Assembly: GCF_002113885.1 (NCBI RefSeq)
Contig: NW_018479914.1
Location: 1 to 64,000 of the forward strand
Origin: Mizuhopecten yessoensis
Taxonomy: Eukaryota
Reading direction: 5' to 3'
Length of the DNA stretch: 64,000 nt
Position numbers and translations under genes: made by a program. Position 1 is the stretch's first letter. Each line of letters starts with the position of its first letter. The notes beneath the pieces were generated by a model. That model made no database searches and was not told the DNA's origin. It worked only from the letters and a program-made list of their open reading frames with translations. Below, piece after piece: positions 1 to 64,000 of this stretch.

Positions 1-2140
1 CTAATAATGTTACCATTAATGTAGTACGATATCCAGTGTGTTAATCGCTAGGATGAGGTACTAATAATGTAACCATTATTGTAGTACGATAGCCAGTGTA
101 TTAATAGCTAGGTTGAAGTACTAACAATGTTACCATTACTTTAGTACGATATCCAGTGTGTCAATAGCTAGATAACCAGTGTGTTAATGGCTGGGGGGAG
201 GGACTAACAATATTACCATTAATGTAGTACGATATCCAGTGTGCTAATAGCTAGGGTGAGGCACTAATAATTTAACCATTATTGTAGTACGATATCCAGT
301 GGGTCAATAGCTAGATATCCAGTGTGTTAATTGCCAGGGTGAGGTACTAATAACGTAACCTTTAATGTAATACGATATCTAGTGTGTTAATAGCTAGGGT
401 GAGGTACTAATAACGTAACATATCCAGTGTGTTAACAGCTAGGGTGAGGTACTAACAATGTTACCATTAATGAGGTACGATATCCAGTGTGTCAATAGCT
501 AGATAACCAGTGTGTTAATAGCTAGGGTGAAGTACTCATAACGTAACCATTAATGTCATACGATATCCAGTGTGTTATTTGCCAGGGTGAGGTACTAACA
601 ATGAAACCATTACTGTACTACGATAACCAGTGTGTTAATAGCTAGGGTGAAATACTGACAATGTAACCATTAATGTAGTACGATATCCAGTGTGTTAATA
701 GCCAGGGTGAGGTACTAACAATGAAACCATCAATTTAGTACGATATCCAGTGTGTTAATAGCCAGGGTGAGGTACTAACAATGAAACCATTATTGTTGTA
801 CGATATCCAGTGTGTTAATAACTAGGGTGAAGTACTAATAATGAAACCATTAATGTAATACGATATCCAGTGTGTTAATAGCTAGGGTGAGGTACTAACA
901 ATGTTACCATTTATGAAATACGATATCCAGTGTGTTAATAGCTAGATAACCAGTGTGTTAATAGCTAGGGTGAAGTACTAATAACGTAACCATTAATGCA
1001 ATACGATATCCAGTGTGTTAATAGCCAGGGTGAGGTACTAACAATGAAACCATTAATGTAGTACGATATCCAGTGTGTTAATAGCTAGGGTGAGGTACTA
1101 ACAATGTTACCATTACTGTAGAACGATATCCAGTGTGTAAATAGCTATGGTGAAATACTAATAACGTAACCAGTACTGTAGTACGATATCCAGTGTGTTA
1201 ATAGCTAGGGTGAGGTACTAACAATGTTACCATTAATGTAATACGATATCCAGTGTGTTAATAGCCAGGGTGAGGTGCTAACAATGAAACCATTAATGTA
1301 GTACGATATCCAGTGTGTTACTAGCTAGGGTGAGGTACTAACAATGTTACCATTACTGTAGAACGATATCCAGTGTGTTAATAGCTAGGGTGAGGTACTA
1401 ACAATGTTACCATTACTGCAGTACGATCACCAGTGTGTTAATAGCTAGAGTGAAGTACTAATAACGTAACCATTAATGTAATACGATATCCAGTGTGTTA
1501 ATAGCCAGGGTGAGGTACTAACAATGAAACCATTACTGTAGTACGATATCCAATGTGTTAATAGCTAGGGTGAGGTACTAACAATGTTACCATTACTGGA
1601 GTACGATCACCAGTGTGTTAATAGCTAGAGTGAAGTACTAATAACGTAACCATTACTGTAGTACGATATCCAGTGTGTTAATAGCTTGGGTGAGGTACTA
1701 ACAATGTTACCATTAATGTAATACGATATCCAGTGTGTTAATAGCTAGGGTGAAGTACTAATAACGTAACCATTAATGTAGTACGATATCTAGTGTGTTG
1801 ATAGCTAGGGTGAAGTACTAATAATGTAACCATTAATGTAATACGATATCCAGTGTGTTAATAGCTGGGGTGAAGTAGTAACAATGTAACCATTAATGTA
1901 ATACGATATCCAGTGTGTTAATAGCTAGGATGAAGTACTAATGTTGTAACCATTACTGTAGTACGATATCCAGTGTGTTAATAGCTAGATAACCAGTGTG
2001 TTAATAGCTAGGGTGAGGTACTAATAACGTAACCATTAATGTAATACGATATCCAGTGTGTTAATAGCTAGATAACCAGTGTGTTAATAGCTAGGGTGAA
2101 GTACTAATAATGTAACCATTAATGNCAGTGTGTTAATAGT
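1..2140. repeat. 60-bp minisatellite (~35 diverged copies), runs off the window start
   Basis: Unit gatatccagtgtgttaatagctagggtgaggtactaacaatgttaccattaatgtagtac, with occasional 23-bp internal sub-duplications; ends just past the single N at 2125. Confidence 0.95.
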
Positions 2141-3078: not shown

Positions 3079-3659
3079 NNNNNNNNNNNNNNNNNNNNNN
3101 NNNNNNNNNNNNNNNNNNNNNNNNNNNNNNNNNNNNNNNNNNNNNNNNNNNNNNNNNNNNNNNNNNNNNNNNNNNNNNNNNNNNNNNNNNNNNNNNNNNN
3201 NNNNNNNNNNNNNNNNNNNNNNNNNNNNNNNNNNNNNNNNNNNNNNNNNNNNNNNNNNNNNNNNNNNNNNNNNNNNNNNNNNNNNNNNNNNNNNNNNNNN
3301 NNNNNNNNNNNNNNNNNNNNNNNNNNNNNNNNNNNNNNNNNNNNNNNNNNNNNNNNNNNNNNNNNNNNNNNNNNNNNNNNNNNNNNNNNNNNNNNNNNNN
3401 NNNNNNNNNNNNNNNNNNNNNNNNNNNNNNNNNNATCTAATTTGTTCCCATACGGTCACAACCTTGTTATATTAACTGAAAATGTAATGAATGACTGAAT
3501 GGATAAGAATAGCTTCATGCATTATTACAATCCTTTCATTTAATTTTGTTCAGTCGCTCTTTGTTACTTAGGAGATGCTTGTACATTTGTATATTTTAAT
3601 TAGCGTCTACACCATAATATGGAAGCGTCACATTACTTTATTTAGATTTCCCCTTCTAG

Positions 3660-14018: not shown

Positions 14019-14332
14019 AAAATTATATTCAATTTATTTCCAACAAATGTCAGATAGGTGAAATCACCCCAGTCATCCACAAATCAATTCCAGCACACGC
14101 TGGGTACAGCTCTAAATAGACCCAGTCGTTCTGTCGGCTCTTGTTGGTAACAGTAGGTATAAACAGTAATAGCGTTTATGTTCAGTAATAGTTTTATAAA
14201 ACTGTGTCATGAATTTGTAATGAAATGATGAAATAGATTCTTTCATTTACGTGTCTATTTACGGGGCTCTGCTGGACAGAACGTTTTGTGTGATCACATA
14301 AATCTGTGTCGATGTAGTACGATGTGGTAGTG

Positions 14333-43100: not shown

Positions 43101-46100
43101 TTATGGCTTTAGTCGAATCCAAGAACAACTGTCAGACACAATCACCAGTCGTTATGGCTTTAATCGAATCCAAGAACAACTGTCACTCACAATCACCAGT
43201 CGTTATGACTTAAGTCGAATCTAAGAACAACTGCCAGTCACAATCGCCAGCCATTATGGCTTCTGTCGAATCCAAGAACATCTGTCAGTCACAATCACCA
43301 GTCATGATGGTTTCAGTCGAATCCGAGAACAACTGTCTGTCATAATCACCAGTCGGTATGGCTTCAGTCGAATCCAAGAAAAACTGTCAGTCACAATCAC
43401 CAGTCATTATGGCTTCAGTCGAATCCAAGCACCACTGTCAGTCACAATAACCAGTCGTTATGGCTTCAGTCGCATCCAAAAACAACTGTCATTCACAATC
43501 ACCAGTCGTTATGGCTTAAGTCGAATCCAAAAACAACTGTCATTCACAATCACCAGTCGTTATGGCTTTAATCGAATCCAAGAACAACTGTCAGTAACAA
43601 CAACCAGTCGTTATGGCTTTAGACGAATCCAAAAACAACTGTCATTCACAATCACCAGTCGTTATGGCTTAAGTCGAATCCAAGAACAACAGTCAGTCAC
43701 AATCACCAGTCGTTGTGACTTCAGTAGAGTCCAAGAACAACTGTCAGTCACAATCCCCAGTCGTTATGACTTCAGTCGAATCCAAGAACACCTGTCAGTC
43801 ACAATCACCAGTCGTAATGGCTTCAGTCGAATCCAAGAAAAACTGTCAGTCACAATCACCAGTCTTTATGGCTTTAGTCGAATCCAAGAACAACTGTCAT
43901 TTACAATCACCAGTTGTTATGGCTTCAGTCACTTCACGCAAATCAAAGAACAACTGTCATTCACAATAACCAGCCGTTATGGCTTCAGTCGAATCCAAAA
44001 AAAACTGTCAGTCACAATAAACAGTCGTTATGGCTTCAGTCGAAACCAAAAACAACTGTCAGTCTCAATTACCAGTCGTGTTATGGCTTCAGTAGAATCA
44101 AGAAACAACTGTCAGTCACAATCACCGGTCGTTATGGCTTCAGTCGAATCTAAGAACAACTGCCAGACACAATCGCCAGTCATTATGGCTTCTTTCGAAT
44201 CCAAGAACAACTGCCAGTCACAATCCCCAGTCATGATGGTTTCAGTCGAATCCGAGAACAACTGTCAGTCACAACCACTAGTAGTTATAGCTTCAGTCGA
44301 ATCCAAGAACGACTGTCAGTCACAATCACCAGTCGTAATGGCTTCAGTCGAATCCAAGAAAAACTGTCAGTCACAATCACCAGTCTTTATGGCTTTAGTC
44401 GAATCCAAGAACAACTGTCCGTCATCATCACAAATCATGATGGCTTCAGTCGAATCCAAGAACACCTGTCAGTCACAATCACCAGTCGTTATGGGTTCAG
44501 TCGAATCCAAGAACAACTGCCAGTCACAATCGCCAGCCATTATGGCTTCTGTCGAATCCAAGAACATCTGTCAGTCACAATCACCAGTCGTTAGGGCTTC
44601 AGTCGAATTCAAGAGCAACTGTCAGTCACAATACAAGTTTTGATGGCTTCAGTCGAATCCAAGAGCAACTGTCAGTCACAATCACCAGTCGTTGTGACTT
44701 CAGTAGAGTCCAAGAACAACTGTCAGTCACAATTGTCAGTCGTTATGGCTTCAGTAGAATCAAGAAACAACTGTCAGTCACAATCACCAGTCGTTATGGC
44801 TTCAATCGAATCCAAGAACAACTGTCAGTCACAATAATCAGTTATGATGGCTTCAGTCGAATCCAAAACCAACTGTCAATCACACTCATCAGTTATGGTG
44901 GCTTAAGCCGAATCCAAAAACAAATGTCAGTCACAATCACCAGTTATGATGGTTTCAGTCGAATCCAAGAACAACAGTCAGTCACAATCACCAGTCGTTA
45001 TGGCTTCAATCGAATCCAAGAACAACTGTCAGTCACAATCACCAGTCATGATGGCTTCAGTCGAATCCAAGAACAACTGTTAGTCACAATCACCAGTCGT
45101 TATGACTTCAGTCGAAAGAACAACTGTCATTCACAATAACCAGTCGTTATGGCTTCAGTCGAATCCTAGAACAACTGTCATTTACAATCACCAGTTGTTA
45201 TGGCTTCAGTCAAATCCAAGAACAACTGTCAGTCACAACCACTAGTCCTTATAGCTTCAGTCGAATCCAAGAACAACTGTCAGTCACAATAACCAGTCGT
45301 TATGGCTTCAGTCGAATCCTAGAACAACTGTCATTTACAATCACCAGTCGTTAGGGCTTCAGTCGAATCCAAGAACAACTGTCAGTCACAATACAAGTTT
45401 TGATGGTTTCAGTCGAATCCAAGAGCAACTGTCAGTCACAATCACCAGTCGTTATGGCTTCAGTCGAATCCTAGAACAACTGTCAGTTACAATCACCAGT
45501 CGTTAGGGCTTCAGTCGAATCCAAGAACAACTGTCAGTCACAATTACCAGTCGTTATGACTTCAGTCGGGAGAACAACTGTCATTCACAATAACCAGTCG
45601 TTATGGCTTCAGTCGAATCCTAGAACAACTGTCAGTCACAATCATCAGTTGTTATGGCTTCAGTCGAATCCAAGAACAACTGTCAGTCACATTCATAAGT
45701 TTTGATGGCTTCAGTCGAATCCAAGAACAACTCTCAGTCACAATCACCAGTCGTTATGGCTTCAGTCGAATCCAAGAACAACTGCCAGTCACAATCACTA
45801 GTCATGATGGCTTCAGTCGAATCCAAAAACAACTGTCAGTCACAATCACCAGTCGTTATGGCTTCAGTCGAATCCAAGAACAACTGTCAATCACACTCAT
45901 CAGTTATGGTGGCTTAAGCCGAATCTAAGAACAAATGTCAGTCATAATCACCAGTCGGTATGGCTTCAGTCGAATCCAAGGACAACTGTCAGTCACAACC
46001 ACTAGTCATGATGGCTTCAGTCGAATCCGAGAACAACTGTCTGTCATAATCACCAGTCGGTATGGCTTCAGTCGAATCCAAGAACAACTGTCAGTCACAA

Positions 46101-46655
46101 TCACCAGTCGTAATGGCTTCAGTCGAATCCAAGAACAACTGTCAGTCACAACAACCAGTCGTTATGGCTTCAGTCGAATCCAAGAACTACTGTCAGTCAC
46201 AATCACCAGTCGTAATGGCTTCAGTCGAATCCAAGAACAACTGTCAGTCACAATTACCAGTCGTTATGGATACAGCAGAATCCAAGAACAACTGTCATTC
46301 ACAATCACTAGTCGTTATGGCTTCAGTCTTATCCAAGAACAACTGTCAGTCACAATCACCAGTCATGATGGCTTCAGTCGAATCCGAGAACAACTGTCAG
46401 TCATAATCACCAGTCGTTATGGCTTCAGTTGTATCCAAGAACAACTGTCAGTCACAATCACTAGTCATGATGGCTTCAGTATAATCAAAGAACAACTGTC
46501 AATCACAATCACCAGTCGTTATGGCTTCAATCGAATCCAAGAACAACTGTCAGTCATAATCACCAGTCGTTATGACTTCAGTCGAATCCAAGAACTGTCA
46601 GTCACTTTCACCAGTCATTATGGCTTCAGTCGAATCCAAGAACAACTGCCAGTCA
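40127..46655. repeat. 51-bp minisatellite, ~6.5 kb including a 461-N gap, intergenic
   Basis: Unit cagtcgttatggcttcagtcgaatccaagaacaactgtcagtcacaatcac; diverged copies with stops and indels. Confidence 0.96.
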
Positions 46656-47272
46656 GTATTCGGTTACCATTATTGTTGTAAGTTACCAAGATGTCAAGCG
46701 TGCAACGAGATGTATCCGATGCCTTTAATTCTGAAATTTGAAAGATAAATGAGACGCAATTTATTTAAGGAAGTCGCAGTATTCATGGATAAAACATCCT
46801 CGAAAGGTTTGAAATTTTAGAATAGTACAGGTATACTGTCTCCTTTCATAATTTATCTACGCGATCGCGAAAGTATTTACCGTGTAATAACCTTCCTTTA
46901 ATACACAAAGAAAGGCCATAAGATACTTGGAAAGTTTTAACATCAACCTTTAGATAAACTCAGTTGACATAATGCGAGAACTATGAAAGAGACAAATGTT
47001 AAAGGGGGAGTAACTCGTAAACCCTATGTCAATGTATAGTTCTACTGTATTTAAATAAAATAACCCCAGCTTCAAAACTATAAGGCTAAATCCAGGGAAC
47101 ACTAGATCACCCATATAAATTACCCATGGAACACATGACATTTCCTTCGGTCGTTTTGGTTAGGTTCATTTCTGTTTGGTTTTGGTGTCCCATTAGTTCC
47201 TGGTCTTATATATCCACATTGATTTCCTGTTTTGTCCATGGGTGTTGGCGATGCAGTGGTTTTCACACAGTT

Positions 47273-49648: not shown

Positions 49649-49746
49649 ATGCAGGAGAAAATCCACCATGAAGAGTACTGGATATCAGGAAGTATTAGGG
49701 ACACCCAGTTTGAGGACCTATATACAATTGGCACAGAACTGGGAAG
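49649..49746 (+). CDS. CaMKIV-like exon 1
   Basis: MQEKIHHEEYWISGSIRDTQFEDLYTIGTELGR; donor AAG|GTAGGT. Confidence 0.88.
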
Positions 49747-52700
49747 GTAGGTTTTTTTAAACACATTTAAGATTATTCGATTATTGATTTGTTTTTATTA
49801 CAGTCTCTGCTATGCTAACAGACCTGTTCACTTTGTATTGTTGTTGAATTACATGTTCCTATGTATCGCCCCTTTCGAGTTTTTTGGGTTGATGATGTGT
49901 TTCATTTTGGTTCAGTGTCCGTTATGTTCTAATTGTTTTGTATGTTATTCTTTTTCATTATGCAATATATCTTGATTATGTTGTTTCTTTATTCGTCAGG
50001 GGGACAAGTGCGGTGGTATACAGATGTGAGCACGTTGGAACTAAAAAGGCGTATGCAGTGAAGAAAATCCCTAAACAGGTGTGTTACTATATAATACATA
50101 ACGATTAAATAAACATTCGTAAACTCAAGTAAAAATACGTTCATAATGAATACAATCTAACAATGATACCACATAAAACCCATAGTAACGACAGTGGCCT
50201 TTAGAAGCGTTGTACATGGAGTCCTGTATAATATACCAAAATATCGACTTGTATTGTTGTTTACTAAGTGACAGGCTCAATATACCACACATTTATGTTA
50301 TACCCTGTATGATCTGTCATTGTATTTGGATCCCTTTAAACAAATACAACAACCATTCTTAAAACGTTAATTAACCGACACATATACTACGCCTAAATAA
50401 AGGGCCAACTCGTGCACATCTAGGGTAACAGCAAAATATTTCAGTGTGAACGGCGGTAATTAATTGTATTTACGAAGTCTTGAAACATGTCTCAATATCA
50501 GCTTCCCTAGGCATTTTAATCAAATACTTGAATTTCTATGTTTTTGTCTTTAATTATAAAGCTGTACATTGTTACGTTAAACACTGTCTCGGAACTACTG
50601 AATTATTTAACTACTGACAATATTACCTTTTCCTATTCGTATAGACTCGAAGTGTTGTTGGAGTCTGTACCAATGTAAATTGTACTAAAAGTCTGAATTT
50701 AATGTATGACCACTGCGGACCGAGTTGTGATGATCGTGTCAGATAAGTCAATACGTGCTATTAATAAAAATAATAAATACCTGAAACAGACGCATGTATA
50801 CGTGTTCACCTCAGTATATATCCACATTAAAGACGATGCTTTTGTACAGAATAATGACAGTAGATGTATATTATTATCTTACTCTTTATAACATATAAAT
50901 GTTAAGTGTGTAGTATACTTAGTAAACTACAGACCAGCATATTGTTAATAGATACCCGCTAGTAAATTGATTTCAGTTAAATGATATCGCTATTATCCAT
51001 GTTAACAATCAAATATGGCGTAATCTAGCGTGTGTCTGTGTATTTTGAATTTCAGAAAAACCGGAAAGTGGTACCAGCAGATGTTGGAAACCTCCTACAC
51101 ATAAGACATCCCAATGTTGTAAGTAAATCTACGAAACCATAAATAATATAACATTTTAAGTAAATTACTAAGATCTTATAAATCGCCTAAACTTAAGAAG
51201 CCCGATAATTTAAGTAAATCTCCTAAATCTAGCAAATCTCAGTGATTTAAATAAACGTCCATGGCTTGAAACATCCAATTTTGTGCATGAGTATCATGTA
51301 ACTCAGCCATCGATAGTAAAAGTGAAATATCTAGCATATATCATCAGATAATACGTGAAATATCTAGCATATCTCATCAGATTTAAGTGAAATATCTAGC
51401 ATATCTCATCAGACAATAAGTGAAATATCTAGCATATATCATCAGGTTATAAGTGAAATATTTAGCATATATCATCAGACAATAAGTGAAGTATCTAGCA
51501 TATCTCATTAGACAATAAGTGAAATATCTAGCATATCTCATCAGATTTAAGTGAAATATCTAGCATATCTCATCAGACAATAAGTGAAATATCTAGCAAA
51601 TATCATCAGGTTATAAGTGAAATATTTAGCATATATCATCAGACAATAAGTGAAGTATCTAGCATATCTCATTAGACAATAAGTGAAATATCTAGCATAT
51701 CTCATCAGATTTAAGTGAAATATCTAGCATATCTCATCAGACAATAAGTGAAATATCTAGCAAATATCATCAGACAATAAGTGAAATATCTAGCAAATAT
51801 CATCAGATTATTAGTGAAATATCTAGCATATGATTAAGCTAACGTCCATGGCTTGAAACATCCAATTTTGTGCGTATCATGTAACTCAGCCATCGATAGT
51901 AAAAGTGAAATATCTAACATATATCATCAGATTTAAGTGACATATCTAGCATATCTCATCAGATTTAAGTGAAATATCTAGCATATATCATCAGATATTA
52001 GTAATCTATCTTAAATCTGAGATATCATCGTGATTATTTAGAGAGAAAAAAAATAAAAAAAATCGATAATATAAATGTTCCATATCAGAGACATCACAAT
52101 ATTGTAAGTGAAAATATCCAACATCTGAGATACCCATATGATGTGAGTAATAAAAAATGCCTGCGTCATTAAGCACGTTTTAATTATAATTCTTGGTTTC
52201 CTGAGGTATATTTGATAACTGCGGACATTTGTCACTTTTACACTATAATAAGTTTATTATGACATTCTCAGTTATTGTATTGTTTCCAACAACTAGAGCA
52301 AACATTTCATTTGTCATGCATAGCAGAACAATTTTCGCATAATTGTTGTTTAGATACACATCACAGAACTGTACGAGACGAAGACCCATATCTACCTGAT
52401 GATGGAGCTTGTCACCGGGGGAGAACTTTTTGACAGGTCAGTGGTCCCTCCCAACACATCAAACATGTTGTTGAAGTCAAAATTGTGCACCTAAATATAC
52501 AACGTGCATTTTCATTATTCACCAATTAAGTAAAAAGGTTCTATACATGTGATATAGATATTTATTTAAAACAATCTCGTATTATGTCGAAACAAATACC
52601 AGTGAAAACCACATGTTTCAAGACTGAATGAGATGCTTGGGTAAAACACATTTTTGATAGTTAAATTTAATCGACTGTATTTGCGTACTAAGAAATGCAA

Positions 52701-55700
52701 CTTGATTATATGTGAAACTTTTCAATCTTAACATATGATTCAATATAAAAAAATAAATATATGTCTGGTAATTATATATCCTTCTATCCAGAATCGTTGC
52801 CCGAGGTTCCTTCTCAGAAAAAGATGCAGCCGAAGCCATGAGGGATATATTGAGAGCACTTAAGGTAATTAAGTATAACATGAGGGATATACTGATAGCA
52901 GTTAAGGTAAAGACGTATAACATGGGAGATATACTGAAAGCACTTAAGGTTGTGACGTATAACATGAGAGATATACTGAGAGCAGTTAAGGTAAAGACGT
53001 ATAACATGGAAGATATACTGAAAGCACTTAAGGTTGTGACGTATAACATGAGTGATATACTGAGAGCAGTTAAGGTAAAGACGTATAACATGAGAGATAT
53101 AATTAGAGCATTTAAGGTAATGACGTATAACACGAGAGATATACTGAGAGCATTTGAAGTAATGACGTGTATCATGAGAGATATACTGAGAGCACTTAAG
53201 GTAATGACGTATAACATAGGAGATATACTGAGAGCACCTAAGATAATGACGTATAACATGAGAGATATACTGAGAGCAGTTAAGGTAAAGACGTATAACA
53301 TGGGAGATATACTGAAAGCTCTTAAGGTTGTGACGTATAACATGAGTGATATACTGAGAGCATTTAAAGTAATGACGTATAACACGAGAGATATACTGAG
53401 AACATTTAAGGTAATGACGTATAACATGAGTGATATACTGAGAGCATTTAAAGTAATGACGTGTAACATGAGAGAAATACTGAGAGCACTTAAGATAATA
53501 ACGTATAACATGAGACATATACTGAGAGCACTGAAGATAATAACGTATAACATGAGACATATACTGAGAGCACTGAAGATAATAACGTATAACACGAGAG
53601 ATATACTGAGAATACATAAGGTAATGACGTGTAGAATGAGAGATATACTGAGAGCATTTATGGTAATGACGTATATCATGAGAGAAATACTGAGAGCACT
53701 TAAGATAATAACGTATAACACGAGAGATATACTGAGAGATTTGAAGTAATGACGTATAACATGGAAATATACTGAGAGCACATAAGTTAATGACGTGTAG
53801 CATGAGAGATATACTGAGATCATTTAAAGTAATGACGTTTATCATGAGAGATATACTGAGAGCACTTAAGGTAATGACGTATAACATGAGAGATATTCTG
53901 AGCGCACTTAAGATAATGGCGTATAACATGAGAGATATACTGAGAGCACAGAAGGTAATGACGTGTAGAATGAGAGATATACTGAGAGCATTTGAAGTAA
54001 TGACGTATATCATGAGAGAAATACTGAGAGCACTTAAGATAATAACGTATAACACGAGAGATATACTGAGAGCATTTAAAGTAATGACGTATAACATGGA
54101 AATATACTGAGAGCACATAAGTTAATGACGTGTAGCATGAGAGATATACTGAGATCATTTAAAGTAATGACGTTTATCATGAGAGATATACTGAGAGCAC
54201 TTAAGGAAATGACATATAACACGAGAGATATACTGAGAGCACTTTAGGTAATGACGTATAACACGAGAGATATACTGAGAGCATTTGAAGTAATGACGTG
54301 TAACATGAGGGATATACTGAGAGCACTTAAGGTAAAGATGTATAACATGAGAGATATAATTAGAGCATTTAAGGTAATGACGTATAACACGAGAGATATA
54401 CTGAGAGCACTTTAGGTAATGACGTATAACACGAGAGATATACTGAGAACATTTAAGGTAATGACGTATAACATGAGTTATATACTGAGAGCATTTAAAG
54501 TAATGACGTATAACATGAGAAATAAAATTAGAGTTTTTAAGGTAATGACGTATAACACGAGAGATATACTGAGAACATTTAAGGTAATGACGTATAACAT
54601 GAGTTATATACTGAGAGCATTTAAAGTAATGACGTATAACATGAGAAATAAAATTAGAGTTTTTAAGGTAATGACGTATAACACGAGAGATATACTGAGA
54701 GCATTTGAAGTAATGACGTGTAACATGAGGGATATACTGAGAGCACTTAAGGTAAAGATGTATAACATGAGAGATATAATTAGAGCATTTAAGGTAATGA
54801 CGTATAACACGAGAGATATACTGAGAGCACTTTAGGTAATGACGTATAACACGAGAGATATACTGAGAACATTTAAGGTAATGACGTATAACATGAGTTA
54901 TATACTGAGAGCATTTAAAGTAATGACGTATAACATGAGAAATAAAATTAGAGTTTTTAAGGTAATGACGTATAACACGAGAGATATACTGAGATCATTT
55001 AAAGTAATGACGTTTATCATGAGAGATATACTGAGAGCACTTTAGGTAATGACGTATAACATGAGAGATATACTGAGAGCACTTAAGGTAATGACGTATA
55101 ACATGAGAAATATAATTCGAGTTTTTAAGGTAATGACGTATAACACGAGAGATATACTGAGAGTATTTGAAGTAATGACGTATAACAAGAGAGATATACT
55201 GAGAGCATTTGAAGAAATGACGTGTAACATGAGAGATATACTGAGAGCAGTTAAGGTAAAGACGTATAACATGAGAGATATAATTAGAGCACTTAAGGTA
55301 ATGATGTATACCATGAGAGATCTGCTGAGAGCACTTAAGGTAATGACGTATAACATGAGAGATATACTGAGAGCATTTAAGGTAATGACGTATAACATTA
55401 GGTATATACTGAGAGCACTTAAAGTAATGACATATAACACGAGATATACTGAGAGCACATAAGGTAATGACGTGTAGAATGAGAGATATACTGAGAGCAT
55501 TTATGGTAATGACGTATATCATGAGAGAAATACTGAGAGCACTTAAGATAATAACGTATAAAACGAGAGATATACTGAGAGCATTTGAAGTAATGACGTA
55601 TAACATGGAAATATACTGAGAACACATAAGTTAATGACGTGTAGCATGAGAGATATACTGAGATCATTTAAAGTAATGACGTTTATCATGAGAGATATAC

Positions 55701-58700
55701 TGAGAGCACTTAAGGTAATGACATATAACACGAAGGATATACTGAGAGCACTTAAGGTAAAGACGTATAACACGAGAGATATACTGAGAGCACTTTAGGT
55801 AATGACGTATAACACGAGAGATATACTGAGAGCATTTGAAGTAATGACGTGTAACATGAGAGATATACTGAGAGCACTTAAGGTAAAGACGTATAACATG
55901 GGAGATATAATTAGAGCATTTAAGGTAATGACGTATAACACGAGAGATATACTGAGAGCACTTAAGGTAAAGACGTATAACATGAGAAATATACTGAGAG
56001 TATTTAAGGTAAAGACGTATAATATGAGAGATATACTGAGAGCATTTAAGGTAATGACGTATAACATTAGTTATATACTGAGAGCACTTAAAGTAATGAC
56101 ATATAACATGAGAGATATACCGAGAGCACTCAAGTTAATGACGTATAACATGAGCTCGAGGGATACACTGAGAGCACTTAAGGTAATGACGTATAACACG
56201 AGATATACTGAGAGCACTTAAGGTAACGACGTATAATATAATAGACTTAAGGTAATGACGTATAACATGAGATACACTTAGAGCGCTTAAGGTAATGACG
56301 TATAATATAATATAATTGAGGTAATGACATATAACATGGGAGATAACGTAAAACAATCATTCAACATGTTACAATTTTTTATCAGGTGTTGAGATAAATG
56401 TGAGTTAGTTCAAAGTGAATATGTACTTCGAGCAGCTTGATGCCAATCAGTGCTATTCTAAAGTTGATTGATATGTTAAGAGATATTTTCATAATTGAAA
56501 GCACTGAGTTTGTTATAAAGTTAGTCAACTTGTCAAGAAAAGTGTGTTTTCGGTTGTAGTGCATGCACGATAATGGAGTGGTCCACTTTGACGTGAAGGT
56601 AGGTTGAACAGTTTGTTTTAATTTACACGTGCACAATGTAACTCTTCTTAAACAATATAAGTACATCATAAATATACATTGATAATTTATACAATGTATA
56701 TATCAACTACATGCTTTCAACATACACTAGTTCAGAGATAGCCATTGTACAGTATTTCAGGGCACATCCTCCTATAAACCTAAAACTAGTTTAGATAGAA
56801 TACATTATACACTGGTTTGTTATGTGTTTTAAGTGCACAAGACATTTGTAACAGAACCGATCTGGGTCATTCACTAATGACTTTGTATAGTTCGTAAAAC
56901 CGGTACTTGTCGTTGTCATTTTCTTTCTGACTATTTGGCGTCAAATTATTTTGTTAAATAAGAGAGGAATGTACCGGAACTGATTTGGATTAATCGCCTG
57001 AGACAAAGTACATGTAGCTTAGTTGGAGAAATTGCCCATCTACAATTTAAAGGTCGGAAGTCCGGGATTCGAATCCAGGTCTGATCAAGTTTTGTAATTC
57101 TTTATTGATCGTAAACTGATACAGTTTATAGATACAACCTTTGCATTAAACTTAATTACAACAAATATTTCCAGGGCCATTCCATTAATACAATATTTAA
57201 TTATCTACTAAATAGTTTGCTCGTAATATGTTCGTTGATGGACAAATGTTCCTAAATTACACAATTCTTTCGTATTTACAGATGATAGAAATATAACTAA
57301 TTTAAAGACGGAGGGATTTATTCGATTATAGGGCTTAATATATTTGGTTCTCAAATCATTATACAAGGGGCATTTTAACATGAAATGATATTCGTCCTCG
57401 ATGTCATTAAGACACAAGGCAAGTTCGAAGCTGACGTGGAACATGGGTGTGTCTGCCTGATTCGATAAGAAGACAATGTGAAATTAAACGTAATCTAACA
57501 ATAGCTTTTATATAATAGGCAGGAATTGGTTTTGAAAGATGAGTTTGCAATGCTAAGTGATCTACAATATGCCTGTATAAAACACATTTTGGTGGCGAAA
57601 CAAAAAAAGTCTCACACTTTTGCTTGAAATTGTCTAATAAACGTTGTTTAACAATATATATAAAATTGTTTGCATTTATAATATGTTGGGAAACCCAAAT
57701 GTCCATCATACCTAATGAGTAGAGCTCGTGTTTGACTTTCGCAACCCAGTTTTTTACAATTTGGATTAGCCCCACATTCGTTGTACATGTACTCGTAACA
57801 TCCTTTTAAAATACAACTGTTGATAGGGGTTAACTTACACCAGTATTTAAATATTCTTAATTTGCGTAAGAGGGACAATGGGAACCTCCCCAGTTCAAAG
57901 TATACCATAGCATTTGGTGTCGACAGTTTAACTCCAAGAATATTTTTACAAAAATCTAATTGTACCCTCTCAATGTCAGGGGCTGTATGGAATCCCCATA
58001 CTTCACTACTATATCCCGCCACACTTCCTACAGATGTGTCAAAGAGACTCAATAATGTGGAAAAATTTAAAAACATTGGTACACAAGCCGAAATTAATGA
58101 GAATAATGCTTTCCTACATTGTGATGCTAACTGTTTTTCGATAAATTAAAGTTTGCACTTTTCCTTTTTCATGTGTATAACCTATCCAGTTAATCATTCA
58201 AATTACATGAATACAGTTACACAATAATATTCACATTAAATCATTACACTTGTTAAATCAACATTTATACTCTTTTCAGCCTGAAAATCTTCTGTATGAA
58301 AGCAACAAAGACCATTCAAAACTGAAATTAGGTGGGTATGACAATAAAGCTATATCCAAAAGTGGCACATAAACAATATCACAGCCAATGCCAATAGGTC
58401 CCTAGGTTTTCTCAAACGCAACCTGAAAATAAACTCACCACATATAAAAGAACATGCATACAAAGCACTAGTTAGGCCTAAACTTGAATACTGCTCTTCC
58501 ATTTGGGATCCACACAACACAAACCAAATTAAACAAATAGAAAAAACACAACGAAGAGCAGCACGCTACGTACACAGCAGATACCACAACACTAGTTCCG
58601 TAACAGACATGATCCACACACTTCAATGGCCAACACTACAAACACGACGCTTATACACTAGAATTATCCTTTTTTACAAAATTATACACAGAATCGTAGC

Positions 58701-61700
58701 TTTAAACCCAACACATATACTCACACCTGTAGACCCCCGCACCAGACAAGTACACCCGTACGCATACAAACACATATCTGCTACAAAGGACACCTGATGA
58801 CCAGTGTGTTAAATAAACTATGTTCTTTTTGTTGTCCATTAGATGCTGTATATAAGTACTAAGTAATGGTTTTGTTATCAGTCCTTGTTTTCGGGGAGCG
58901 TGTAGATCGACACGTATACTAAGTAGCTGGTATAACACTAGCCCTTGTTGTTTTTAGTAGTTGTTTTAGAGAGAAAAGGGTTTTATTGTCTCTGTTATCA
59001 GAAATGTTAAAAAACAGTTTCCTGATCACAAGATTAAGTATAATTGCTAATATACAAGTCTGTCATTTAATTGGACCGATAAGTAAGTAACGGTATAAGT
59101 GTGTCAATAGTAACGGCACAAGTCTAGAACAAATTCTTTCATTCATGTCAAGGTATCTATTTCTATTGTTCTAACTCAGATAACTTGTTTTATTTTATGT
59201 ATACAGAGAATAGTTTTAAAAAAATACACTTTTTTTGGTATGTATAGACAAACATTTATGAATAAATGTTTTTATATTTGTTGTATAGCCTGCCCTCGTA
59301 CCAGCTATGTTGCATATAATGTCTCCTGCTGGTACAATATCACGTTTTAGCGAAGTGTGACAGAGTCTTGTACCGTTGTTGGTGATAAATGTATGTATGT
59401 TACAGCCGACTTCGCTCTGCACCGTATAATAGCTGGTGATGTGAGATCTAACTCTGTCTGCGAGTCACCGGGATACGTTCGTAAGTACAAAACATATATC
59501 ATATGTATCATAGCTGGTGAACGTTATTATATATTTCTATAGACGTCAGTGACATAGTCGTTCGTTACGTACCGGTAAACGTGTATTGCAAAACCATGCG
59601 TTATATAAGCACGGGTTCCAACGCATACATTGTATAAACCTGGGTTACCAAGACATTCGTTATATGGGCGTGGGTTACAATAAAATGTTACATAGGCGTG
59701 GATTGCAGTGAAATGTTATATTGGCGTAAGTTACAATAAAATGTTATATAGGCGTGGGTTACAATAAAATGTTATATAGGCGTGGGTTACAATGAAATGT
59801 AACATGGGCGTGGATTGCAGTGAAATGTTATATTGGCGTAGGTTACAATAAAATGTTATATAGGCGTGGGTTACAATAAAATGGTATATAGGCGTGGATT
59901 ACAATTAAATGTTATAAAGGCATGGGTTACAATAAAATGTTAATTAGGCGTGGGTTACAATGTAATGTTATAAAGGCGTAGGTTACAATAAAATGTTATA
60001 TAGGCGTGGGTTACAGTGAATGTAACATGGGCGTGGATTGCAGTGAAATGTTATATTGGCGTAGGTTACAATAAAATGTTATGTAGGCGTGGGTTACAAT
60101 AAAATGGTATATAGGCGTGGATTACAATTAAATGTTATAAAGGCATGGGTTACAATAAAATGTTAATTAGGCGTGGGTTACAATGTAATGTTATAAAGGC
60201 GTAGGTTACAATGAAATGTTATATAGGCGTGGGTTACAGTGAAATGTAACATGGGCGTGGGTTCCAATTAAATGTTACATGGGCGTGGGTTACAATGAAA
60301 TGTTATATAGGCCTGGGTTACAATAACATGTTACATGGGCGTGGGCTACAATAAAATGTTACATAGGCGTGGGTTACAATGAAATGTGATATAGGCGAGG
60401 GTTACAATGAAATGTCATATAGGCGTGGGTTACAATGAAATGTTACATGGGCGTGGGTTACAATAAAATGTTACATGGGCGTGGGTTACAATAAAATGTT
60501 ATATAGGCGTGGGTTACAATACAATGTTACATAGGCGTGGGTTACAATGAAATGTTATATAGGCGTGGGTTACAATGAAATGTTATATATGCGTGGGTTA
60601 CAAAAACATTCGTTACAAGCGGACCATAACAAGGCTTTAAGNAAATATAACAATAATGTAGTGGTTAATATAACAATATACAACAGTGGTTAATATAACA
60701 ATACTGTAGTGGTTAATATAACAATATACAATAGTGGTTAATATAACAATACTGTAGTGGTTAATATAGCAATACAGTAGTGGTAAATATAACAATACTG
60801 TAGTGGTTAATATAACAATATACAATAGTGGTTAATATAACAATACTGTAGTGGTTAATATAACAATACTGTAGTGGTTAATATAGCAATACAGTAGTGG
60901 TAAATATAACAATACTGTAGTGGTTAATATAACAATATACAACAGTGGTTAATATAACAATACTATAGTGGTTAATATAACAATACTGTAGTTGTTAATA
61001 TAGCAATAGAGTTGTGGTTAATATAACAATACAGTAGTGGTTAATATATCAATACAGTAGTGGTCAATATAGCATTATACAGTAGTGGTTAATATAACTA
61101 TACAGTAGTGGTTAATATAACAATACAGAAGTGGTTAATATAGCAATACAGAAGTGGTTAATATAGCAATAGAGTTGTGGTTAATATATCAATACAGAAG
61201 TGGTTAATATAACAATACAGTAGTGGTAAATATAACATTATACAGTAGTGGTTGATATAACAATACAGTAATGGTTATGATATAACGATACAGTAATGGT
61301 TAATATATCAATACTGTAGACGTTAATATAACAATACAGTAGTGATTAATATAACATTATACAGTAGTGGTTAATATAACATTATACAGTAGTGGTTAAT
61401 ATAACATTATACAGTAGTGGTTAATATAACATTATGCAGTAGTGGTTAATATAACAATACAGCAGTGGTTAATATAATAATACTGTAGTGGTTAATATAA
61501 CAATACAGTAGTGGTCAATATAACAATACAGAAGTGGTTAATATAACAATACAGTAGTGGTTAATATAGCAATATAGTTGTGGTTAATATAACAATACAC
61601 AAGTGGTTAATATAACATTATACAGTAATAGTTAATATAGATAAATAATATCTCCCGAATAAATATTAACAGTCTTAAAATGGACACTCGATACAGCTGA

Positions 61701-63803
61701 TATAGAGTATAGCATATACTTTATATCATATCCAACATTGCTTTTACCGTGAGGACAATTTAAAACGACTCATATAAATATAATATATAACAAAAATATT
61801 TCGTGGACAGTGTATAAATATTATATTACATTAAGACTATATATTTTATCAAATAACTGTTGCGTACATTATGACACAATAAATGTATAAGATGGCTCAC
61901 AGTGTGTAGTATGATGATTCATATACAATGCTACATAACATAGGCGAGTCATAACATGACATGAAATTTACATGACATGGATGTATTTTAAAAAATATAT
62001 CTACAATATGCACTATAACATCTTTTTTCCCCAGACTATGCGGTGTTGAACCATTCGAAAGCGTAAATCATGATGTTGGCGAGATATACAAGAAAATTCT
62101 CAAAGTAGATTACAAGTTTGATCCGACAGTCTGGTCGAAAATAAGCGAAAATGCAAAGGTTAGTACTATTGACTTAACACAATAAGAAAGGAGGTTTCGC
62201 CTCCTTGATCACCTGAGCCCGTATTCATGAAATCGTTCTTATGCTCAAGTATGGATTTTAAGCCTAATTTCTTGTTTCAGTAATAAATCAATAAAAAAGC
62301 CTAATTTGTCAATGCTTCGGAAAAATTTGAAGAGACTCAAAAAAGCATAAGGTTTTCAATATTTACATTTGACGTTTTTGATCATTTGACATGATTTAAG
62401 GGAGTGACAAGAAAACTGATTTGAGCACAGAATCAATGTTTGATCATGAGAACGGTTTCATGAATATGGACCCTGAGTTTTCCCAGTACTTGATCTTTTC
62501 TATTAAAGATAGTATTTGCAGAAATGTTCGTTGCATAATGACGAATTTGTACTTTATTTCATTATTATTATATTAAACTTTTAAGTGCATATTCAGGGAG
62601 AAAGTGCATAACTTAACTTCATTTGAATGAAGTTGACCTTACGCTGATACTGTATTTTTATTTATCTTTGTCAAAAAGAGTCATCGAAATATTGTATATA
62701 CGTCGGTATTAATTCATCAGCCTACTATTAATGACATATCTGAGTTTTCCGTTACAAGTAAGTACACAAATATAAACGTACCTTCATGCTTTGTCTACTT
62801 ACATGTACTTACAGGATTTTATTACAAGATTATTACAAAAAGATCCCAGGAAGAGATTGTCAGTAGACGCAGCTCTCCGACACCCTTGGGTAATTGGCAC
62901 GGCCGCAAAAGGTGACCATCTCATCGAAACCCAGGAGAAAATCCGAGAGTTTAACGCCAGAAGGAGGTTGAAGGTATGGCTTCGTGTTTGTATTGTTTAG
63001 TGGTCCATCGACAATGATGCGAGTCATTTTGGGCCAAACGTGAAAGATAAGGCATCACCATGAAATATTATAAACACACAGCAATGTGAAGGACACAATT
63101 GAAACTCAATACAACGTATAATATAACAACAATGCGAAGGTGCATGCCAAAGAGAAAATGATGCAAAGTGAAGACACATGAATGTAATTGACTACAATGT
63201 GAAAGTGAGACATCGATGAAAAGGTGAAATATAACGACATAAAGTTAAGTCAAATAACGATAAGACAGCAATGTGAAGGTAACAAACAACGACGCAAAGG
63301 TAAGGCACATCGAAGTAACGATAAGACAGCAATGTGAAGGTAAAACACAACGACGCAAAGGTAAGGCACATAAAAGTAACGATAAGACAGCAATGTGAAG
63401 GTAAAACAACGACGCGAAGGTAAGGCACATCAAAGTAATGATAAGACAGCACTATGAAGGTAAAACACAAAGACGCAAAGGTAATGCACATCAAAGTAAC
63501 GATAAGGCAGCGTATAAAGGCAACACAACGATGCAATTTTCGGGTTCGGGTTTATTCCCTTATAGAATAATATAAAGCCGTCGTTATGTTATACGTCGAC
63601 TGTGAATTTACATTGTGTCGCGACTATTGTCTAGCAATCATTCATACAGTAATTTGAATAGATGGTAGTGCCATATTTCTTGTGTATTTTAGGCTGCAGT
63701 GGGAGGGGTTCTCTTCGCATCCAAAGCTGCTAGGATGATGAGCAACATGAGGGCAAGTGTGACAATACAGGTGGACAACAACCAGATATCTACAGACGCA
63801 TAG
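49649..63803 (+). CDS. CAMK4: calcium/calmodulin-dependent protein kinase type IV-like (divergent); one exon missing from the assembly
   Basis: Exons 49649-49746, 50000-50078, 51056-51118, 52354-52436, 52792-52864, 56560-56598, 58280-58331, 59406-59480, [missing], 62035-62158, 62815-62973, 63693-63803. CaMKIV-type signatures YWISGSIRD, ELGRG, YAVK, MELVTGGELFDRIV, LCGVEPF, HPWVIGTAA..QEKIREFNARRRLKAAV. The symbol denotes the family; orthology is not established. Confidence 0.9.
50000..50078 (+). CDS. CaMKIV-like exon 2
   Basis: GTSAVVYRCEHVGTKKAYAVKKIPKQ (Gly loop, beta3 Lys). Confidence 0.92.
51056..51118 (+). CDS. CaMKIV-like exon 3
   Basis: KNRKVVPADVGNLLHIRHPNV; tttcag / GTAAGT. Confidence 0.9.
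51254..52000. repeat. 31-33-bp minisatellite in kinase intron 3, with its ~75-bp leader duplicated (51254 and 51841)
   Basis: Unit aagtgaaatatctagcatatctcatcagacaat / ...cagattt. Confidence 0.9.
52354..52436 (+). CDS. CaMKIV-like exon 4
   Basis: IHITELYETKTHIYLMMELVTGGELFDR. Confidence 0.95.
52792..52864 (+). CDS. CaMKIV-like exon 5
   Basis: IVARGSFSEKDAAEAMRDILRALK; donor AAG|GTAATT. Confidence 0.92.
52837..56345 (+). repeat. 42-bp minisatellite (~83 copies) spanning the exon 5/intron 5 junction
   Basis: Unit catgagagatatactgagagcacttaag|gtaatgacgtataa; the first copy is the coding end of exon 5. Confidence 0.96.
56560..56598 (+). CDS. CaMKIV-like exon 6 (catalytic loop)
   Basis: CMHDNGVVHFDVK; ttgtag / AAG|GTAGGT; phase 0-0 fits both neighbours. 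Confidence 0.9.
57015..57085 (+). mobile_element. degenerate tRNA-like SINE head
   Basis: A box tagcttagttgg, B box ggattcgaatcc; no intact cloverleaf. Confidence 0.5.
57208..58142 (-). mobile_element. 5'-truncated, frameshifted non-LTR retrotransposon ORF2 C-terminus (RTEX-like)
   Basis: Three overlapping minus-strand ORFs: EKQLASQCRKALF..GYSSEVWGF..IERVQLDFCKNILGVK..ELGRFPL; RLRLISHCLLIESGRH; C-terminal Zn-knuckle CLNDIEDEYHFMLKCPLYNDLR. Confidence 0.88.
58280..58331 (+). CDS. CaMKIV-like exon 7
   Basis: PENLLYESNKDHSKLKL; tcttttcag / GTGGGT. Confidence 0.93.
58363..58797 (+). mobile_element. CR1-group LINE fragment (post-RT region)
   Basis: WHINNITANANRSLGFLKRNL..AYKALVRPKLEYCSSIWDPH..IEKTQRRAARYV..SSVTDMIHTLQWPTLQTRR. 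Confidence 0.9.
59406..59480 (+). CDS. CaMKIV-like exon 8 (DFG-equivalent and activation loop)
   Basis: ADFALHRIIAGDVRSNSVCESPGYV; ttacag / GTAAGT. Confidence 0.92.
59600..60620. repeat. 28-bp minisatellite (~35 copies)
   Basis: Unit ggcgtgggttacaataaaatgttatata. Confidence 0.93.
60643..61640. repeat. 23-25-bp minisatellite (~42 copies) starting at the single-N gap
   Basis: Unit gtggttaatataacaatacagta. Confidence 0.93.
62035..62158 (+). CDS. CaMKIV-like exon 10
   Basis: LCGVEPFESVNHDVGEIYKKILKVDYKFDPTVWSKISENAK; ttttttccccag / GTTAGT. Confidence 0.93.
62216..62472. mobile_element. MITE, PIF/Harbinger-like
   Basis: Imperfect ~25-bp TIRs agcccgtattcatgaaatcgttctt / gagaacggtttcatgaatatggacc, flanked by a 3-bp CTG duplication (62213-62215, 62473-62475). 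Confidence 0.7.
62815..62973 (+). CDS. CaMKIV-like exon 11
   Basis: DFITRLLQKDPRKRLSVDAALRHPWVIGTAAKGDHLIETQEKIREFNARRRLK. Confidence 0.95.
63245..63535. repeat. ~60-bp tandem repeat (~5 copies) in the last kinase intron
   Basis: Unit aagtaacgataagacagcaatgtgaaggtaaaacacaacgacgcaaaggtaaggcacatc. Confidence 0.88.
63693..63803 (+). CDS. CaMKIV-like last exon (end of calmodulin-binding helix, stop)
   Basis: AAVGGVLFASKAARMMSNMRASVTIQVDNNQISTDA*; tattttag acceptor. Confidence 0.88.
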   Translation, partial: AAVGGVLFASKAARMMSNMRASVTIQVDNNQISTDA

Positions 63804-64000
63804 ACAGTGTATTGCCGGAATAATTGGCCGATAAACATCGACAGTTTGAGTGGGGCACGACACCAAAACAGTTTGACTGGTACAATATACCAAGACACTT
63901 TGACCAAGACAGTTTAACGGGGACACGACACAAGGACAGTTTGGCCGAAACACGTCAACAAGACCGTTGGTCGATACATTTAGACCGATTCAAATGGACA

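Follow-up and report, generated by a model that had tools for sequence, protein, structure and literature searches.

CaMKIV needs both Ca2+/CaM and the upstream kinase CaMKK, which phosphorylates a Thr in the activation loop (T200 in the human protein) that is read by the RD Arg. In RD kinases, three groups coordinate the phosphorylated residue, namely the RD Arg, the beta9 Lys, and a base in alphaC (R165, K189, and H87 in PKA). DAPK/MLCK-type CaM kinases, which are non-RD, are active without activation-loop phosphorylation; DAPK1, which carries HFD, does not need this modification, and the extra-catalytic domains of the DAPK proteins comprise ankyrin repeats and a death domain. Another member of the CaMK group, CASK, was long labelled a pseudokinase and has lost the DFG Asp (GFG). 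A search of the literature on scallop CaMKIV returned nothing relevant. From an unrelated kinase group, the pseudokinase IRAK3 has a DFA motif in an active-like conformation (PMC7955167).

The gene described here, referred to as gene A, is a CaMKIV-like gene of Mizuhopecten yessoensis located at 49649-63803 (plus strand) of the window, i.e., the whole 64,000-nucleotide stretch analyzed, which forms the beginning of contig NW_018479914.1. Its coding sequence comprises 12 exons and encodes 345 aa; one of the exons lies on an orphan contig of the same assembly. The first-pass annotation proposed a CaMKIV paralog and raised the question of a coexisting canonical copy; such a copy, gene C (HRD, DFG, STVCGTPGYC-APE), lies in convergent orientation ~54 kb downstream, with its 3' end on the same contig at ~117-119 kb (minus strand) and its 5' part at the end of contig C5158. 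A third CaMKIV copy, paralog B (P0002, XP_021354748), is encoded on another contig (C2940:343-359 kb); its catalytic Asp is gone (HRN), and Met stands in place of the loop Thr, while the RD Arg, DFG, and APE are kept. Genes A and C agree in their exon-intron layout and phases, and the layout of paralog B is also the same.

Exon 1 (49649..49746, on the plus strand like all exons in the window) starts with the ATG, encodes MQEKIHHEEYWISGSIRDTQFEDLYTIGTELG(R), and ends in phase 2 at the donor AG/gtaggt; this start is shared with the Ylistrum and Pecten orthologs. Exon 2 (50000..50078) carries the Gly-rich loop GRGTSAVV and the beta3 Lys (AYAVKK), and exon 3 (51056..51118) the alphaC helix (KNRKVVPADVGNLLHIRHPNV), in which the salt-bridge Glu is replaced by Asp; the GAT codon of this Asp lies outside the read-covered stretch and is taken from the assembly alone. 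The beta4-beta5 region and hinge (IHITELYETKTHIYLMMELVTGGELFD(R)) are encoded by exon 4 (52354..52436), which shows 100% identity to Ylistrum, and alphaD-alphaE (IVARGSFSEKDAAEAMRDILRALK) by exon 5 (52792..52864), which is 87.5% identical to gene C. The catalytic loop in exon 6 (56560..56598; CMHDNGVVHFDVK) has Phe for the RD Arg and keeps the catalytic Asp and Lys, and the catalytic Asn is kept in exon 7 (58280..58331; PENLLYESNKDHSKLKL, PENLLY), which ends in phase 1 (G). Exon 8 (59406..59480) reads (A)DFALHRIIAGDVRSNSVCESPGYV with a further C before gtaagt, also ending in phase 1, and concentrates several changes, namely DFA, Ser for the CaMKK-target Thr, and ES for GT (SNSVCESPGYV). Exon 10 (62035..62158) is entered in phase 2 with (L)LCGVEPFESVNHDVGEIYKKILKVDYKFDPTVWSKISENAK, exon 11 (62815..62973; DFITRLLQKDPRKRLSVDAALRHPWVIGTAAKGDHLIETQEKIREFNARRRLK) covers subdomain XI, the autoinhibitory segment (EFNARRRLK), and the start of the CaM-binding segment, and exon 12 (63693..63803; AAVGGVLFASKAARMMSNMRASVTIQVDNNQISTDA, AAVGG...) runs to the stop TAG at 63801-63803, with the final ..DA and stop shared by the orthologs. 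Every residue quoted in the first-pass annotation (alphaC Asp, HFD, DFA, SNSVCESPGYV, the trailing C, and FNARRRLKAAV) was found at its place. Its statement that all visible exons are intact holds for the 11 exons in the window, which are bordered by AG/GT and free of internal stops, but exon 9 is missing from the window.

Neither a motif search nor three-frame reading of 59470-62040 revealed the APE..DxWSxG exon (subdomains VIII-IX) between 59481 and 62034; only minisatellites were found there. Two unlike arrays occupy 59659..61639, one of 28 bp x 34 (59659-60603) and one of 23 bp x 42 (60644-61639), and meet at a single N at 60642. Intron 5 carries another minisatellite (42 bp x 81; 52837..56236), whose unit duplicates the final 27 nt of exon 5 together with the donor. 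It is specific to M. yessoensis; in Ylistrum, the same intron measures 392 bp, and in Pecten, 364 bp. The lack of an exon between 59481 and 62034 could mean that gene A is a decaying or recently inactivated pseudogene in which the APE exon was truly deleted and exon 8 is spliced to exon 10 out of frame. The direct 59480>62035 join gives a frameshift to ..GYVHYAVLNHSKA and a stop after 10 codons, and both public gene models were forced into irregular solutions at the exon 8 junction. However, the exon is present on the 730-bp orphan contig (G000:C68697:353-430, minus strand; 82 nt, PPE..DMWSCGVIAYI), whose first 97 bases equal window positions 60545-60641, up to the N. It has ag/gt borders and fitting phases and is identical to Ylistrum at 25 of 26 positions. 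Since the orphan contig abuts the N, the hole at 60642 is an assembly fault, caused by the minisatellites, and the direct exon 8-exon 10 join was rejected as the true mRNA. With exon 9 included, the phases are continuous and every border is canonical. We infer the presence of exon 9 in the mRNA from the phases, conservation, and the orphan contig, the RNA joint 59480>62035 leaving the intervening letters undefined. The codon after GYV, which was expected not to encode Ala, encodes Pro (C+CT), so that the three scallops all read PPE.

The pseudogene explanation is also opposed by exons 10-12, which are intact and conserved like the remaining exons, and by abundant transcript contigs, unlike those of a nonsense-mediated-decay target. 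Spliced RNA contigs were found in two independent studies (X1 and X2), measuring 2654 nt at a depth of 24.5 and 1709 nt at a depth of 119. They join exons 6-7-8..10-11-12, matching exons 7-12 with 0 differences, and the exon 7-exon 8 joint occurs in contigs of both studies. They extend 331 and 1246 nt past position 64000, which places the end of the 3'UTR beyond the window. The same RNA joints contradict both public models, which were rejected: OWF36517.1 (P0001), with a mini-exon 'HVSDIVVRYVP' and exon 10 skipped, and the RefSeq model, with the junction 'GYVRKLCG'. In the raw RNA-seq runs X21 and X24, 0 reads fell on gene A exons, and reads were present only on the intron 7 repeat, which argues that expression is restricted. 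A Logan-derived protein of gene A was not found in the protein collection searched. Absence of transcripts and a dN/dS near 1 had been named as signs of decay; gene A shows spliced RNA and, as detailed below, dN/dS of 0.06-0.11. With introns kept and no stops, it is neither a processed nor a decaying pseudogene, and a true deletion of the APE exon is very improbable.

Even less probable is that the odd codons stem from mistakes of sequencing or assembly and that the gene is in truth a canonical CaMKIV. In favor of this, the assembly is broken into 82,659 contigs and contains a demonstrable fault at 60642. However, the HFD, DFA, Ser, and ES letters are the same in the RNA contigs of the two studies, where a loose end before 58278 reads ...GTCCACTTTGACGTGA, i.e., V-H-F-D-V. 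HFD, DFA, and Ser are thus not assembly errors. The same changes occur in the genomes of two other genera, and the canonical gene occupies a locus of its own. For HFD, DFA, Ser, ES, and PPE, the artefact explanation is refuted.

Orthologs of gene A were identified in Ylistrum balloti (P0153) and Pecten maximus (P0154 and L031), with the convergent arrangement of A and C shared. They carry HYD, DFA or DSA, Ser, and ESPGYV-PPE, so that H[YF]D, DxA, Ser, ES, and PPE are common to all A sequences. The beta3 Lys, HxD Asp, catalytic Lys and Asn, DFG Asp, and APE Glu are kept in all of them, as shown by AYAVKK, H(F/Y)DVKPEN, and D(F/S)A in Mizuhopecten, Ylistrum, and Pecten. As to whether HFD and DFA are conserved in orthologs, the odd motifs are shared, but HFD occurs in M. 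yessoensis only, the state of the clade being HYD, with Tyr in Ylistrum and Pecten, and Pecten has DSA, in which the regulatory-spine Phe is lost. Similarly, the alphaC Asp is present in the M. yessoensis assembly but is species-specific (Glu in Ylistrum, Asn in Pecten). Across the clade, R, H, or Q takes the place of the beta9 Lys in DFGLSK, a loss that the first-pass annotation did not list. The RefSeq model of P. maximus skips exon 8 in frame.

When 30 CaMKIV proteins ranging from flatworms to vertebrates were aligned, deviation was limited to the gene A clade and paralog B; HRD, DFG, the P+1 GT, alphaC Glu, loop Thr, and A/SPE were otherwise invariant, the lone loop-Thr exception outside these being Ser in one flatworm. 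At the positions altered in gene A, 25 other CaMKIV sequences show no or almost no variation. Changes at positions otherwise invariant in this alignment are not due to chance.

In the maximum-likelihood tree, A, B, and C fall inside pteriomorph bivalve CaMKIV (support 86/80), with A beside the canonical C. The A clade (support 100/100) has a stem branch of 0.56, compared to 0.21 for C, and tips of 0.02-0.12; the branch of paralog B is 1.09. By the Nei-Gojobori method, dN/dS of gene A among the three genera is 0.06, 0.11, and 0.075, like the values for gene C (0.074 and 0.11), at a dS of ~1 between scallop genera. Within the genome, dN between A and C is 0.31 with synonymous sites saturated, and dN/dS among A, B, and C is unusable due to this saturation (pS 0.82-0.91).

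The best PDB sequence match of exon 11 is human CaMKIV (2w4o; E 1.1e-11, compared to ~1e-6 for CaMKI). An AlphaFold model of the Ylistrum ortholog (pLDDT 80.6, pTM 0.81), in which alphaC and the activation loop are of low confidence, also has human CaMKIV 2w4o as the first Foldseek match (TM 0.95 by target). Together with the tree and the synteny of A and C in three genera, these matches place gene A in CaMKIV by descent, nested among the mollusc proteins. Like CaMKIV (human CAMK4, gene C, and P0155/P0156), gene A has an autoinhibitory EFNAR(R/K)KLK followed by a basic amphipathic helix; the putative autoinhibitory/CaM-binding segment EFNARR(R/K)LKAA.GGV(L/I)FA..A.RMM, reported as retained in the first reading of the sequence, is indeed present and conserved in the orthologs and is modelled as one long C-terminal helix (293-326). 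Unlike CaMKIV, gene A has Tyr/Phe for the RD Arg, DFA/DSA for DFG, Ser for Thr, ES for GT, and PPE for APE; its beta9 Lys is lost, and its alphaC Glu is not fixed. The mechanistic hallmark of CaMKIV, a CaMKK-phosphorylated Thr read by the RD Arg, is thus missing from all three A orthologs, and gene A belongs to the non-RD kinases.

DAPK1/MLCK/titin-type kinases are similar in having HFD or H(Y/L)D for HRD and, following the kinase domain, an autoinhibitory helix that binds CaM, which is putative in gene A. In contrast, there is no shared descent: the tree indicates that the non-RD state arose independently inside CaMKIV, DAPK1 is a poorer match than CaMKIV in both sequence and structure, and DAPK keeps DFG and APE. 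The protein encoded by gene A ends at 345 aa, without ankyrin repeats or a death domain, and lies outside the DAPK family. The CaM-kinase domain of CASK, which is among the top structural matches, shares with gene A membership in the CaMK group, altered Mg-binding and catalytic motifs, the maintained fold, and a CaM-binding helix (putative in gene A), but it belongs to another subfamily, and gene A keeps the DFG Asp. IRAK3 shares the DFG Gly > Ala change with Asp and Phe kept, but lacks HRD (CGS), whereas gene A keeps the His and catalytic Asp.

We consider gene A to be an intact, expressed CaMKIV duplicate of the scallop lineage under purifying selection, which most likely encodes a CaM-gated, CaMKK-independent kinase (probability of about 0.5). 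Gene A arose beside the canonical gene, diverged fast once, and then came under purifying selection. It retains the parts required for ATP/Mg binding and phosphotransfer (Gly loop, beta3 Lys, catalytic Asp, Lys, and Asn, and Mg-binding Asp) and the putative autoinhibitory/CaM-binding helix (EFNARRRLKAAVGGVLFA..RMM), while the phospho-Thr read-out has been lost as a set (RD Arg to Tyr/Phe, beta9 Lys to R/H/Q, and CaMKK-target Thr to Ser); the P+1 loop and nearby motifs are also altered (GT>ES, APE>PPE, and DFG>DFA). Ca2+/CaM would then most likely free the autoinhibitory helix as in CaMKI/IV, with no CaMKK priming, in the manner of DAPK/MLCK-type kinases. CaM gating, CaMKK independence, and residual catalysis are predictions from the sequence; substrate preference is probably different, and turnover is possibly low.

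It is quite possible that gene A instead encodes a conserved pseudokinase or CaM-binding scaffold with a non-catalytic role, e.g., engaging Ca2+/CaM or partners of CaMKIV, or acting as a competitor of the neighboring canonical CaMKIV, the kept catalytic residues then serving only nucleotide binding or fold stability. In agreement with this, the alphaC Glu that partners the beta3 Lys varies in the A clade (E/D/N), none of the three A genes has the DFG Gly and Pecten lacks the Phe as well, the DFG/activation-loop exon is the one skipped in frame by the Pecten RefSeq model, and DFA is found in an active-like pose in the pseudokinase IRAK3 (PMC7955167). The fast stem branch after duplication, the strong conservation of the regulatory helix, and the loss of the catalytic Asp (HRN) in the sister paralog B point in the same direction. 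On the other hand, the beta3 Lys, HxD Asp, Lys, Asn, DFG Asp, APE Glu, and hinge/alphaD substrate-binding residues are kept at a dS of ~1, and the three-residue rule (loss of the VAIK Lys, HRD Asp, or DFG Asp) does not predict a pseudokinase for gene A, whereas it does so for paralog B. The term "pseudokinase", offered in the first-pass annotation, is not borne out by these residues, which include the catalytic Lys and Asn and are kept in three genera.

Beyond the reading of gene A as a CaM-gated kinase, a more speculative and rather doubtful scenario is that scallops evolved from CaMKIV a Ca2+/CaM-gated, CaMKK-deaf kinase with a re-shaped P+1 pocket (ES, PPE) and its own substrates, which together with B and C would form a three-member module, the divergent copy or copies tuning or competing with the canonical enzyme. 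Gene A does not represent a new class of system, and lineage-specific atypical kinase paralogs are common. Its significance lies in the removal of the whole phospho-Thr read-out in one paralog, with the core and putative CaM-binding helix kept and this state frozen across scallop genera at a synonymous divergence of ~1, which offers a natural mutant set for the residues behind CaMKK dependence (Tyr/Phe at RD, DFA/DSA, and alphaC Glu/Asp/Asn). In addition, two public M. yessoensis gene models and one P. maximus model are corrected.

Paralog B resembles gene A in that it, too, arose in scallops by duplication of CaMKIV, shows altered motifs, and has an identical exon layout. It differs in keeping the RD Arg, DFG, and APE, in the loss of the catalytic Asp (HRN) and loop Thr (Met), and in its longer branch. 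Long-lived pseudokinases usually lose some catalytic residues, as paralog B did.

The CaMKIV-like gene of the window, referred to here as gene A, runs on the + strand from the ATG at 49649 to the TAG at 63801-63803 and is represented there by 11 exons, all with canonical AG/GT borders: exons 1 (49649-49746), 2 (50000-50078), 3 (51056-51118), 4 (52354-52436), 5 (52792-52864), 6 (56560-56598), 7 (58280-58331), 8 (59406-59480), 10 (62035-62158), 11 (62815-62973), and 12 (63693-63803). The motifs quoted in the first-pass annotation are encoded by these exons exactly: VVPADVGNL in alphaC as read from the assembly, with Asp replacing Glu; HFDVK/PEN in the catalytic loop and EFNARRRLK/AAV in the autoinhibitory/CaM-binding region, each split by an exon border (slash); (A)DFALHR in the DFG region; and SNSVCESPGYV in the activation segment, followed by a single C ahead of the gtaagt donor. 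The beta3 Lys (AYAVKK), the catalytic Asp/Lys/Asn, and the Mg-binding Asp are likewise present, in agreement with their claimed retention. Exons were searched singly and joined locally for phase checks and codon alignments, whereas full-length comparisons used database proteins (P0001, P0002, P0152-P0158). The best PDB match of the exon 11 peptide was human CaMKIV (2w4o, E 1.1e-11), and the 100% match among 1.84 billion representatives was P0001 (OWF36517.1, 'Calcium/calmodulin-dependent protein kinase type IV [Mizuhopecten yessoensis]'), encoded on a 118,960-bp contig.

Exon 8 ends in phase 1 and the exon at 62035 enters in phase 2, so an intervening exon of 3n+1 nt, carrying APE..DxWSxG, is required. 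It was not found between these exons in the window, where a 28-bp x 34 array meets a 23-bp x 42 array at a single N (60642). With the matching exon from the Ylistrum ortholog as query, it was located elsewhere in the assembly that contains the window, on an orphan 730-bp contig (G000:C68697:353-430(-), L034; 25/26 identical to the Ylistrum exon). This exon 9 has 82 nt and the borders ag/CT...CT/gtaagt; the trailing C of exon 8 completes Pro (PPE), and a Leu is completed once exon 10 (62035) contributes its first base. The first 97 bases of the contig are identical to window 60545-60641, reaching the N, and 23-bp array units make up its final 48 bases. Since the contig abuts the N and the phases are correct, the hole in the gene is an assembly fault at that position. 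Counting exon 9, whose inclusion in the mRNA is predicted, gene A comprises 12 exons and 345 codons.

Two Logan RNA contig sets from different studies (X1, X2) and two raw RNA-seq runs (X21, X24) were aligned to window 58200-64000. X1 and X2 each yielded one gene A transcript contig (2654 nt, depth 24.5; 1709 nt, depth 119), with GT..AG joints at exon 7-8, 59480>62035, 62158>62815, and 62973>63693, a loose end ahead of exon 7 matching the end of exon 6 (...GTCCACTTTGACGTGA), zero differing letters over the exons, and a 3'UTR extending past the window end. At the 59480>62035 joint the intervening letters are undefined, which is compatible with the 82-nt exon 9 without demonstrating it. A decaying pseudogene, to which an absence of transcripts would have pointed, is excluded, as is a sequencing artefact behind the odd codons. 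The joints also contradict two gene models: OWF36517.1 has an invented mini-exon, 'HVSDIVVRYVP' (59548-59580), after exon 8 and lacks the 62035 exon, and the 319-aa RefSeq model P0152 runs across the exon 8 donor, adding 'RK' (59476-59485). X21 and X24 gave no reads on the gene A exons within 58200-64000, indicating that expression is restricted to some samples. The sole part of this region that they covered was a repeat-derived 149-aa open frame in intron 7 (58348-58800); these reads carry several differences and diverge into unlike sequence at 58795, and thus derive from other repeat copies.

Exon-by-exon assembly searches and local tblastn identified two further CaMKIV-like genes in M. yessoensis. 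Gene C, the canonical paralog whose coexistence the first-pass annotation had proposed checking, carries TEAG, HRD, DFGLSK, STVCGTPGYC, and APEVL..DMWS and lies downstream of gene A, about 54 kb away, in convergent orientation. Gene B (G000:C2940:343200-359100 (+), L017 and L018; protein P0002) has HRN, lacking the catalytic Asp, carries Met at the loop Thr position and SSPDY at that of GTPGY, and is predicted by sequence rule to be a pseudokinase. Genes A and C share 62% identity, with dN 0.31 and saturated synonymous sites, which dates the duplication as old.

Among the matches to P0001, A-type proteins came from scallops only, followed in rank by canonical CaMKIV of scallops and other animals. 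The orthologs are P0153 (Ylistrum balloti, 344 aa) and P0154 (Pecten maximus); in both species the two genes A and C lie next to each other in convergent orientation, and A is followed downstream by an F-box/WD40 gene. The RefSeq model P0154 omits an intact in-frame exon 8 (DSALSQIIAGDVRCNSVCESPGYV; L031:14990-15061, LR736846.1), which may reflect true exon skipping or a model error. The unusual motifs are conserved in the orthologs: HYD, SNSVCESPGYV or CNSVCESPGYV (with Ser and ES), the trailing C, and PPE are common to both, and DFA recurs in Ylistrum, with DSA in the Pecten genome; HFD and the alphaC Asp are specific to M. yessoensis. Nei-Gojobori dN/dS for A was 0.06 (Mizuhopecten-Ylistrum), 0.11 (Mizuhopecten-Pecten), and 0.075 (Ylistrum-Pecten), with dS of 0.84-1.15 among genera; for C it was 0.074 and 0.11 in the first two comparisons. 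In the ML tree, clade A (support 100/100) groups with B and C (86/80) inside pteriomorph bivalve CaMKIV. Its stem measures 0.56 vs 0.21 for C and its tips 0.02-0.12, showing a burst of change with constraint afterwards; the gene B branch is very long (1.09). Across a 30-sequence alignment, departures from HRD, DFG, GT, and the alphaC Glu occur only in clade A and gene B, with minor variation elsewhere (Ser for the loop Thr in one Macrostomum sequence, SPE for APE in one other).

RD kinases have three ligands for the activation-loop phosphate, namely the RD Arg, the beta9 Lys, and the phospho-acceptor residue (PKA R165, K189, T197). CaM kinases of the non-RD type, DAPK1 (HFD) among them, function without loop phosphorylation. 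At these positions clade A has Tyr/Phe, R/H/Q, and Ser, respectively, and its changes are coordinated around one function, the read-out of the activation-loop phosphate. Conservation of the catalytic residues and of the autoinhibitory/CaM helix makes it the favoured reading that the gene A product, which in M. yessoensis shares HFD with DAPK1, would be a kinase gated by CaM and independent of CaMKK, its P+1 pocket being altered; we give this reading about even odds (0.5). A serious and quite possible rival is that the protein is kept for a conserved non-catalytic role: full catalytic competence is argued against by the alphaC position, which is E, D, or N across the three genera, by the Pecten DSA, and by DFA itself, the state of the pseudokinase IRAK3 (PMC7955167).

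The predicted structure of the Ylistrum ortholog (30-row alignment; pLDDT 80.6, pTM 0.81) shows the normal bilobal kinase fold and, C-terminally, a long helix (293-326); alphaC and the activation loop are its weak parts. Its best structural match was human CaMKIV 2w4o (TM 0.95 by target), then CaMKII, CaMKI, CASK, and DAPK1. Mammalian CaMKIV is also modelled in the 96-nm repeat of bovine sperm axonemal doublets (PDB 9fqr, chain Er), a possible lead to the site of action of the scallop paralogs.

Intron 5 of gene A holds a 42-bp x 81 minisatellite (52837-56236) that begins inside exon 5, its unit comprising the last 27 nt of that exon and the AAG/GTAA donor. The corresponding intron is short in Ylistrum (392 bp) and Pecten (364 bp), which makes this an M. 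yessoensis-specific expansion. Gene C is broken inside a minisatellite: its 5' part runs to the end of contig C5158 (L029:6400-6596), and its 3' part begins on the window's contig, at the far end (minus strand, about 117-119 kb; L015:8000-8960 = G000:C76587:118000-118960). The unit of this minisatellite ('..VHVTAPQIFV..') is a copy of the APE exon's acceptor and initial codons, making it a second exon-junction-derived minisatellite within the CaMKIV gene family. Further multi-kb arrays at 14194-19631 and 40184-46681 contain spurious ORFs of up to 1792 aa, and N runs occupy 3079-3434 and 41032-41492.
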